A stretch of DNA of 64,000 nt, taken from Pavona decussata. Its lineage: Eukaryota. Of this stretch, positions 54,696 to 63,474 are shown piece after piece. Positions within the stretch are counted from its first letter, which is position 1. Each line of letters begins with the position of its first letter. Both the position numbers and the translations under genes were made by a program. The notes under the pieces are model-generated. The model was not told where the DNA came from. It was given only the letters and a program-made list of their open reading frames with translations, and searched no databases. The stretch lies in NCBI GenBank assembly GCA_977016875.1, contig CDRNST010000319.1, positions 310,001 through 374,000 on the forward strand. The letters run 5' to 3'.

Positions 54696-57600
54696 ATGAA
54701 TATGCTCGCTGTACCTATCCTGGCAGCCTTCGTCTTTGGAGTTGTAGTTTGTGATGATGACGAGACCATGGCTTTGGTAGGCATTTTGCCCAATTTAGTT
54801 AAGGACAACTTTTTTTTAAATCAAATTTTCAGTACCAAATGAATATTTAGTAATGTACTTGTTTTACTTTCGAAACAGTTTAAAGCTGTTTTTTTTTATG
54901 TGACAGTTTCGCAATAATACTTTATACCTCTCATTATTTCATTTCCTCAATTTTCAAACAGTTCTTCTACGGAGGGAAAAGCGTAGCCTAAGGTTTTCAA
55001 AACCAAAGGTGAACAATGTGTCGATGTGAATATATAGAATATCCATATATCTGGACTCCGGATAATAAAAAGAATATGCTAGTGAATCAAATTTCACCAC
55101 AGACCCATCCGTAACTGACATGATAACTTACAGCGCCAAGGGTTTGAAATCATCGCTGTTTCTTTGGATTCTTCTTTAGAGCTTTTAAAGTCACTAATTT
55201 CCTTTGAAGATTTTTCTTTGCAATTTACAAAATGAAAACATACAGTACCTTGATATATACCGTTGTTATCCATTAGAAATTTCTAAATCACTACGGCTAC
55301 ATATCACCCACGCGAAGCGGCAACCACGATGTGCCAACAGCCATCCGAAAATTTCAAGAGTACTTTGGTCTTGAGGTCAGCGGGATTTTAGATGCCCCAA
55401 CGATCAACCTTATGAAAAAGCCTCGATGTGGTGATCCTGATGTTAGCGGTGACGGCAATCGTGAGCGAAGATTTGCTACACGGGGAAAATGGTCCAAGAC
55501 ACATTTGACTTATTATGTCCAGCCCGGTCAAGATCTCTCTGTTGTAAGTAGCAATCATGTTATAAATTAATAAATCCGTATTAGGAAATTTATGACCAAA
55601 TTTCTCTCCAATGTTTGGGAGAAAAAAAAGGCAGCTTACTTTAGAAGATTTGTTTTGCTTGTTGTTGTTGTTGTTGTTCAACAACACAAATATAATGGTT
55701 TAGCCAAATTCTGCCACGCAGAGAAGAAATAAGAGATCCTCGTCAACCAACTCAACCGTATGCAACAAAAATTGAATTTCCCACAAAGGCAAATAGTCTT
55801 CAAATATATTTATCACAATATTGCGTAACATTTGTCTGCTATACCATATTGTCGCCTAGAGATGCTAAAGAGTAAGGAAAGGCTAAACTAGTGACATCTT
55901 CCTAAGAAATTTGTGTATGCCACGTTACACAAGTAAGATGTGAATGCTGTTAAAAATATGTCTAAACAAGGCTGTTTCTTAGTTATTGGCAACGATTTGT
56001 ATTGGTAGTTTTTTCCATCTACAATGTACCTTGCGTCAGCTCCCTACTCGTAACACGTAAGCTTCATAACATTAAATTACTTTTGTAATAATAAGAAAAA
56101 AAAACTTTGCCTTATATCCTTTTCATCATACATTTACAGTTTTTCACAAAACTCAGTTGTTATATCAGTCACCGAAATCTTAGCTTCAGAAAGTTCCGTT
56201 GAGCCCCTGTGAGGATTCCCCATAAGTACTTACTATAGTAGAGTAGTGGGTATCAAGATAAGGATAAAATATGTAAAATAAACAAAGTTATCACACAATT
56301 GTCCATGGTTATGTCTTATTTTTGTTTCCAATACAACTTAAAATAGTTGGTTTTGAATATATCATTTCAGTAATTTTCAAAAGTTGCATGTGATTTTGAT
56401 TTCTTTACGTCAACCATGCAGTGAGCTGATTTATACGACAGCTTCAGCGGCGCTGCACTTAAGAGAGAATTTGCCATAATTTGTCAGTTTATAAGTAATG
56501 TGTTTATTTGATTCTGATCATAACATACCCAGGATCTGCAGAAGCAGATATTTGCTGAAGCACTGAAATTCTGGGCTGACGTTTCTGGGTTGTCGTTCAG
56601 TGAAGTAAGCAGTGCAGGTAGTGCCGACCTCAAAATCAGGCAAGTCAATCTATCTACCCTGATTTTAATAAACCTTTAAAAAAACCGGCTGATTATAAAA
56701 ACTTTCGAACTATAATAGAGCAGCAATATTTCATTATAGCTCTGCTCTTATCGCCAATTACTCTTTGTAATGTTTAACATTTGAATGGAATGATTTCTCT
56801 GGACATCTTTCCCAAATAGACGCATTCAATGAAGAAAACGAAAAACTTGTATATTTTAGGGACGATTGTTATTCTAATAATAATAATAATAATAATAATG
56901 ATGATGATGATGATGATGATAATAATAATAATAATCACATTGAGGACTTTCTGTCTAAATATCTGGAACTAATAAGCAGTTGCTACTAACTATGTTCCTA
57001 ACATCAAAAAGCAAAAAAAAAAAAATATTCTCTGCAATTTATTGAGCCAGGGTAATAACAATCAAATGGGAAATTTCTTGGCAGAGTAAAGTTTGTATCT
57101 GTTCAAAGAAAATGAAGAGCACGTGAACACGCGTCATCTTATCAAACGAAAATCTTTATTTATATGTTTTTTTCCCCAATCCAGAGAAAGGATTCAACAC
57201 TTGTCCCTACAAAAAAATCTCAGATTATTCATCTTTCCCTTTATAACTAGTTGATTGTACATTTTATTTTCCAGTTTTGGTACCAGAAGCCACAGTGGCA
57301 CCAATGTGGAAAGTACCTGTCCTCTCTTATTTGACGGACCATTACCTGTCCTAGCGCATGCTTTTTTTCCTCAAGACGGACGTTCTCATTATGACGAGGA
57401 CGAAACGTTTACCCACGAAACTCCACAAGGTATCAATCTACTGTGGGTAGCAACGCACGAGTTTGGACATTCGCTTGGCCTCGACCACTCAAACGTTCGG
57501 GGCGCCATCATGTACCCCTATTACACAGGATACGCCCCAGGCCTGAATCTACATTCAGACGATATCGCTGGGATACAATCTTTGTATGGTAAGGTTATAT

Positions 57601-63474: not shown

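Follow-up and report, generated by a model that had tools for sequence, protein, structure and literature searches.

Two LamG exons in phase with a matrix metalloproteinase gene of the coral Pavona decussata: a candidate gene fusion by intronic exon shuffling

The stretch of DNA analysed here (the window: 64,000 nucleotides, positions 310,001 to 374,000 of contig CDRNST010000319.1, or C319, in the Pavona decussata assembly GCA_977016875.1) holds a tandem cluster of matrix metalloproteinase (MMP) genes, with about nine sets of propeptide and catalytic exons detected by tblastn. The last MMP gene of the cluster, designated gene J, lies on the plus strand between positions 54696 and 63474 and is modelled as seven in-phase exons, the last two of which encode laminin G-like (LamG) domains. 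Exon limits were obtained by reading the sequence and checking it with a script, two boundaries being set by hand. The elements of the gene are the following (window coordinates):

54696-54776, plus strand: exon 1, ATG and putative signal peptide, 27 codons with a hydrophobic core; phase 0 donor GTAGGC
55277-55543, plus strand: exon 2, PG_binding_1 propeptide (Pfam, 1.6e-8), PRCGDPD cysteine switch, RERR furin-type site and start of the mature enzyme
56533-56639, plus strand: exon 3, first part of the catalytic domain; GC-AG intron donor GCAAGT
57275-57588, plus strand: exon 4, catalytic core with zinc motif and Met-turn AIMYP (Peptidase_M10, 1.6e-32); leaves in phase 1
59561-59590, plus strand: exon 5, 30-nt hinge PNTGGDVDT, phase 1 in and out, donor GTAAGG
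61348-61594, no strand: zone where intron of MMP origin meets DNA of LamG-family origin, with an inverted scrap of inter-LamG intron at about 61478-61547
61638-62258, plus strand: exon 6, LamG domain 1 (Laminin_G_3, Pfam 2.2e-17), phase 1-1, "internal" type ending ..KRIK/G
62259-62845, plus strand: intron 6, 85-86% homologous to the inter-LamG introns of the arrays on contig C180
62846-63474, plus strand: exon 7, LamG domain 2 (Pfam 3.5e-18), "terminal" type ending ..QAV and the stop codon TAG (63472-63474)
63523-63528, plus strand: polyadenylation signal AATAAA, 49 nt past the stop

Joined together, the exons amount to 2049 nt, or 682 codons and a stop, with no internal stop codon. They lie on the same strand and in the right order and have canonical splice sites; the donors of exons 4, 5 and 6 are all in phase 1, and the frame runs unbroken through compatible phases, as in a single gene. 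Each LamG exon contributes 207 amino acids, making a pair of 414 residues. A first-pass annotation of this DNA had listed a catalytic exon, a 30-nt hinge exon and two phase-compatible LamG exons of about 207 residues followed by a stop and AATAAA, and all of these were found where it had placed them. Joining of exons in the two copies of the locus (see below) served for stop counts and for the ratio of non-synonymous to synonymous substitution (dN/dS), while homology searches were run exon by exon.

The first four exons describe a matrixin. Exon 1, whose flank is homologous to the 5′ end of a second gene of the window, gene G, encodes a hydrophobic N-terminus that, on reading of the sequence only, makes a putative signal peptide. 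In exon 2, the cysteine switch falls inside the PG_binding_1 match, the arrangement of a matrixin propeptide. In exon 4, a zinc motif of the HExxHxxGxxH type is followed by the Met-turn, which places the enzyme among the matrixins (MEROPS M10A). Exon 4 aligned with the solved catalytic domains of MMP-13, -7, -8 and -9 (about 3e-21), and the alignment to MMP-13 holds column by column. From these features, we infer that the product of gene J is a secreted matrixin zymogen with furin-type activation at RERR.

Gene G, on the minus strand, is the closest relative of gene J, with 78-84% protein identity in the propeptide and catalytic exons. The exons that follow its catalytic part are different: after the hinge comes a ShK exon, and then a tiny last exon.

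37073-37008, minus strand: hinge exon of gene G (PNTGGGGGVQTPAPTPGPTGS), phase 1-1, same acceptor context as the J hinge
36219-36112, minus strand: ShK exon of gene G, in the place occupied in J by the LamG exons

Homology between the two genes at the DNA level spans the 5′ flank, exons 1 to 4 and the hinge exon (59498-59584 against 37145-37050), goes on through an intronic block and a tRNA-like short interspersed element (SINE; 61164-61347 against 36828-36647) and ends at position 61347. The small hinge exon picked out in the first-pass annotation is thus real and has a homologue in the sister gene. The MMPs closest to J in three other assemblies (L031-L033; 75-76% in exon 4) are each followed, at a distance of 1-2 kb, by a ShK exon and by no LamG exon, and P0364 is a spliced product composed of MMP, Gly-hinge and ShK. 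Because the closest MMPs of three other assemblies carry ShK, the MMP-ShK architecture is, by this comparison, the ancestral state of the subfamily to which J belongs. No ShK remnant was detected by tblastn with the ShK exon of gene G in the introns of J, in the DNA downstream or in the second copy of the locus (L007). These findings alter one element of the initial description, which had the LamG pair standing in place of hemopexin: it is ShK that the pair replaces, in a subfamily devoid of hemopexin. A whole-genome search with PF00045 gave 43 matches, none of them on contig C319, and the hemopexin MMPs of this coral sit on contigs C12, C143 and C93.

The SINE present in intron 5 of J (61164-61347) and in the G intron (36647-36828) is also found at 7651-7835 and 24296-24401, and is scattered through the MMP cluster and upstream of the C180 array. 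Since it occupies matching places in the introns of J and G, it may predate the duplication that gave rise to the two genes.

The LamG exons of J are the only Laminin_G_3 exons in the window, and of the 27 MMP catalytic exons in the genome, that of J is the only one with LamG exons within 100 kb. They belong to a large family. Exon 6 has at least 117 matches in the genome, about 20 of which, at 76-90% identity, lie in the C180 arrays. Genes of the family share a common plan: a 17-codon signal exon with a phase-1 donor, seen conserved in L002 and L006; internal LamG exons ending ..K/G; and a terminal exon ending ..QAV or ..QAA and a stop. The J pair comprises one internal-type and one terminal-type exon. 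The ending of exon 7 is the same as that of the terminal exons C180:910k and C180:893k, and the 3′ flank of the pair matches that of another family member. On the upstream side, homology to the family begins about 45 nt 5′ of exon 6. The 250 nt that separate the end of the SINE from this point include the inverted scrap of inter-LamG intron, and the stretch would mark the breakpoint zone within the old hinge-ShK intron.

Two further LamG loci bear mention. The region C180:892000-948000 (L002, L011-L030) contains about 20 tandem LamG exons organised as genes, with a median pairwise dN/dS of 0.45. About 4.7 kb past the end of the window (L003:4688-5588, or C319:378688-379588) there is a third LamG copy, whose coding sequence is disrupted by a frame shift and a TAG; at the corresponding place, L007 has a 62-nt scrap only, beside reverse-transcriptase open reading frames (ORFs).

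Several observations suggested that the MMP exons and the LamG pair form one gene. Exon 6 cannot start a protein, as no ATG in its frame comes earlier than about residue 64. Neither blastn-short nor tblastn detected a family-type signal exon in intron 5, and the intervals 59591-59877 and 59926-61637 contain no hydrophobic exon that begins with ATG and ends in a phase-1 donor. The pair thus lacks a family-type 5′ exon of its own within this intron, in line with its original attribution to the MMP gene. Furthermore, the conserved hinge donor GTAAGG calls for an acceptor, and the first ones in phase predicted downstream of it are those of the LamG exons. On this basis, we consider it moderately likely that gene J is a young, lineage-specific MMP-LamG-LamG fusion, generated by intronic exon shuffling and spliced from position 59590 to position 61638.

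A second copy of the locus (L007/L008) retains the 682-codon frame across all seven exons, and none of the splice sites, the GC donor included, has been lost. Aligned to the window with blastn, gaps counted, it shows 91% identity in the 5′ half and 95% in the 3′ half; non-coding DNA of the two copies differs by 3.9-4.8% substitutions and 5 indel events per kb. Exon 1 is conserved, exon 2 has a dN/dS of 0.15, exon 3 and the GC donor that follows it (56640-56645, intron 3) are 100% identical, and the hinge exon has a single change and keeps both of its splice sites. No indels separate the copies in the 799 nt of MMP exons. The 1250 nt of LamG exons differ by 3.0% substitutions and have no indels against 6.25 expected (P about 0.002), an expectation that is too high for exons, as indels cluster in low-complexity intron DNA. 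All four LamG exons, two from each copy, group in a single clade of the tree (98/96), so that their intactness is not explained by recent gene conversion with an outside donor. Overall, the whole model is maintained in a copy that evolves separately, albeit at a shallow depth of 4-5% divergence.

Exon 4 stands apart in this comparison (57275-57588 against L007:5570-5883). As many as 12.7% of its sites differ (dS 0.18, dN 0.13; 21 of 104 residues), next to 4.8% in the flanking introns and 0% in exon 3, and the zinc motif is kept in both copies. The patch looks like the outcome of gene conversion or of rapid change around the specificity pocket. Among J, G and the MMP gene of L009, which lies further downstream (see below), none was a close donor for a conversion.

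A number of results weigh against the fusion or lend it no support. RNA runs hold 5-6% of the sampled words of the interval 57275-63474, compared to about 26% expected if exons 4 to 7 were fully assembled; the words that are present could come from a 3′ tag, from one exon or from repeats. Neither exon 5 nor the opening 30 nt of exon 6 had an exact match in the metagenome contigs scanned. The combination of M10 and LamG is absent from the protein libraries searched with single exons. Between the two copies, the LamG exons have a dN/dS of 0.80 (28 non-synonymous to 10 synonymous changes), a value close to neutrality and higher than the family median (0.45); other young duplicate pairs of the family also reach 0.9-1.0. 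Lastly, the two assemblies that contain the L007/L008 copy also contain copies 99.98-100% identical to the window (L010, L034). For this reason, a description of the gene as conserved in a sister species was rejected: the diverged copy may be a divergent haplotype or a paralogue, and the conservation is shallow rather than proof across species.

Some of these results are what one would expect if the LamG pair were a passenger, that is, the copied 3′ fragment of a LamG gene lying behind an MMP that has lost ShK, outside the mature mRNA. Gene J would then encode a catalytic-domain-only enzyme like MMP7 and MMP26, and would end by read-through either of the exon 4 donor or of the hinge donor, with a stop seven codons beyond the latter. 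The scarcity of words of the region in the RNA runs agrees with this possibility, as do the dN/dS of 0.8-1.1 for the LamG exons between copies, the presence of three AATAAA motifs in intron 5 and the fact that the read-through frames stop fast. The broken third LamG copy past the window implies that fragments of this kind decay here, and the fusion would be the sole case among 27 MMP genes. However, in both copies the two frames of 207 codons are intact, and the acceptors, the donor, the terminal stop and the AATAAA are all in place, with no indel or internal stop codon, in a neighbourhood that accumulates 5 indels per kb. Conservation of the hinge donor would be pointless without an acceptor downstream, and the near-neutral ratio is shared with other young family pairs (about 0.9-1.0) that are presumed to be functional. 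We regard the passenger explanation as possible but rather unlikely.

Less probable still, to the point of being doubtful, is that the LamG exons make up a separate secreted two-LamG gene, whose promoter and first exon lie unrecognised inside or beyond intron 5. Genes with two LamG exons do exist, as exemplified by C180:892k and 893k with a signal exon 1.7 kb upstream, and a divergent first exon could be missed, given how little the DNA in front of first LamG exons is conserved from one locus to another. Yet positions 59591-59877 and 59926-61637 contain neither a family signal exon nor any signal-like phase-1 exon. Moreover, homology to the G intron reaches to within 290 nt of exon 6, and that to the LamG family starts just about 45 nt before it. 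As for a mis-join of the assembly, suspicion could arise from the duplicate-rich nature of the region and from the position of J near contig ends in the three contigs with its own copy (C319, ctg101355 and ctg131463), but four further contigs from two public assemblies, two of them 99.98-100% identical and two with the diverged copy (91-95%), show the same order, spacing and orientation, making this explanation extremely improbable.

The nature of the LamG domains was analysed through profile and structural comparisons. Both exons score above the gathering threshold for Laminin_G_3 (64.0 and 66.6 bits, with the cut-off at 27.6). An assignment to the pentraxin family was rejected, the scores for Pfam Pentaxin being 18.5 and 21.4 bits for a cut-off of 25. 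Of the "LamG/pentraxin-like" label initially given to these exons, the LamG half stands and the pentraxin half does not. Structure prediction with AlphaFold (AF2) from an alignment of 60 sequences yielded a LamG model with a mean confidence (pLDDT) of 97.4, in which a concanavalin-A-like beta-sandwich is accompanied by one C-terminal helix; this check had been proposed at the outset and bore out the domain call, the model matching jelly rolls and LG domains. Fold matches, searched from the AF2 model of exon 6 by structural comparison (VIA Z), the best of them to jelly rolls that bind carbohydrates, were as follows:

AbnA domain 4: Z 22
Scaffold jelly roll of the clostridial neurotoxin binding fragment (HCN): Z 18-21
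Sialidase lectin domains and CBM40: Z 15-17
Pentraxins (PTX3/SAP): Z 15-17
LamG-like module of PAPP-A: Z 16.6
Laminin/neurexin LG domains: Z about 13

Partner domains were scanned in 28 long proteins among the 150 best representatives of LamG homologues, drawn from 1.84 billion proteins. They comprised C-type lectin, discoidin, SUEL lectin, WSC, PAN, EGF, collagen, ZP and CUB domains and parts of adhesion G-protein-coupled receptors. The partners are mostly lectins, a context that favours a recognition role for the LamG pair, probably towards glycans.

The same scan bears on the novelty of the architecture. In none of the 28 long homologues is the module associated with Peptidase_M10, and no protein combining M10 with LamG was found among the closest relatives; full-length relatives of about 680 residues lie beyond the reach of exon-by-exon queries, and the word-index search misses proteins that greatly exceed one exon in length. 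A profile search seeded with a long Nematostella protein and the two exons retrieved for the most part LamG proteins of amphioxus and Nematostella and proved uninformative. A full-text search of the literature returned no description of an MMP with LamG domains. Thus, the statement in the first-pass annotation that a characterised M10A-LamG-LamG enzyme is not known agrees both with the exon-by-exon searches and with the literature.

We propose the following scenario for the origin of gene J. Recombination in the hinge-ShK intron would have joined the body of an MMP gene to the last two exons of a gene made of a signal exon and n LamG exons, together with its 3′ flank. As phase 1 is common to the hinge donor and to every LamG exon, the reading frame would have stayed intact from the start. 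The signal peptide would send the protein out of the cell, where the cysteine switch would hold it in a latent form until a cut is made after RERR. With about 11 residues, the linker would then keep the catalytic domain beside a bivalent recognition module, and this LamG module, rather than hemopexin or ShK, would choose the substrate or the location of the enzyme, most likely a glycan-bearing matrix, mucus or a microbial surface. Taken in full, namely that J is an expressed MMP retargeted in one step through exchange of its ShK tail for a bivalent glycan-recognition module taken from the most expanded LamG family of the coral, the proposal has in our judgment an even chance of being correct.

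The specificity of MMPs is largely set by ancillary domains, and the repertoire of such domains in animals is small: hemopexin, fibronectin inserts, ShK plus Ig, or nothing. A matrixin with two lectin-like LamG domains would, if confirmed, represent a new exosite solution. The side-by-side sister genes G, with ShK, and J, with two LamG domains, would constitute a natural domain-swap experiment. In terms of coral biology, the fusion would tie together two tandemly expanded extracellular families and provide a candidate for glycan-directed proteolysis at the interface with mucus, symbionts or skeleton. The proposed origin can be followed within one genome, which offers the donor family, the recipient sister gene with its ancestral tail, a putative intronic breakpoint zone and the phase rule. 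The main value of J would be as a clean and datable example, restricted to one lineage, of a protease retargeted by exon shuffling.

Other features of the region concern the MMP cluster and the introns of J. On the minus strand, between G and J, the segments 44483-44862 and 50076-50632 contain fragments resembling the 5′ half of J, with a copy of exon 2 at 91% and pieces of promoter and intron 1 at 86-90%. No catalytic exon was detected near them, and they are probably the remains of an MMP copy that was truncated or became a pseudogene. L009 (ENA ERZ25073751, ctg101355) contains another MMP gene, about 40 kb downstream of J, with a catalytic exon 81% identical to that of J; this gene is missing from the assembly of the window because contig C319 ends before it, at position 405,919. 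Within J, intron 4 contains a short-period repeat (58499-58816) with "YHTIP" and "WYGMV" runs in opposite frames, which accounts for the GC-skew peak at 58-60 kb. Intron 5 has about 1.4 kb of extra DNA relative to G, including a 92-codon ORF (60564-60842) that we take to resemble the C-terminal part of ORF2 of a non-LTR (long terminal repeat) retrotransposon.

Among known systems, the cnidarian MMP-ShK enzymes, represented by gene G and P0364, are the closest to gene J, with which they share the putative signal peptide, the PG-binding propeptide, the cysteine switch, the furin-type site and a phase-1, Gly-rich hinge. The hinge has 22 codons in G and 10 in J. Gene J differs in having lost without trace the ShK exon and the tiny last exon present in G, in whose place stand the two LamG exons. 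A ShK domain is also present in vertebrate MMP23. With classical hemopexin MMPs (MMP-13, MMP-8, MMP-9), J has in common the zinc motif, the Met-turn, the positions of structural His and Asp residues and the zymogen logic, but it is without the hemopexin repeat. On the LamG side, the nearest relatives are the secreted multi-LamG proteins of the same coral (C180, C245, C75, C519; P0001 with three LamG domains). Their exons are 76-90% identical to those of J and share the phase 1-1 design, the inter-exon intron and the terminal ending; however, these genes start with the 17-codon signal exon, whereas J starts with a whole MMP.

More distant likenesses are those of fold. Carbohydrate-binding jelly rolls and pentraxins (AbnA domain 4, CBM40, the trans-sialidase lectin, PTX3/SAP, HCN) have the fold of the J LamG domain, with Z values of 15-22 over 160-196 residues, but their identity to it is just 12-21%, and the likeness is one of fold only; in the case of the clostridial neurotoxin scaffold domain, it implies no toxicity. 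Finally, PAPP-A belongs to a different protease family (M43), its module is single and N-terminal to the protease, and it is not related by descent to the J fusion; nevertheless, in joining a LamG-like jelly roll to a metzincin protease, as J appears to do, it provides the nearest precedent for a metzincin combined with LamG.

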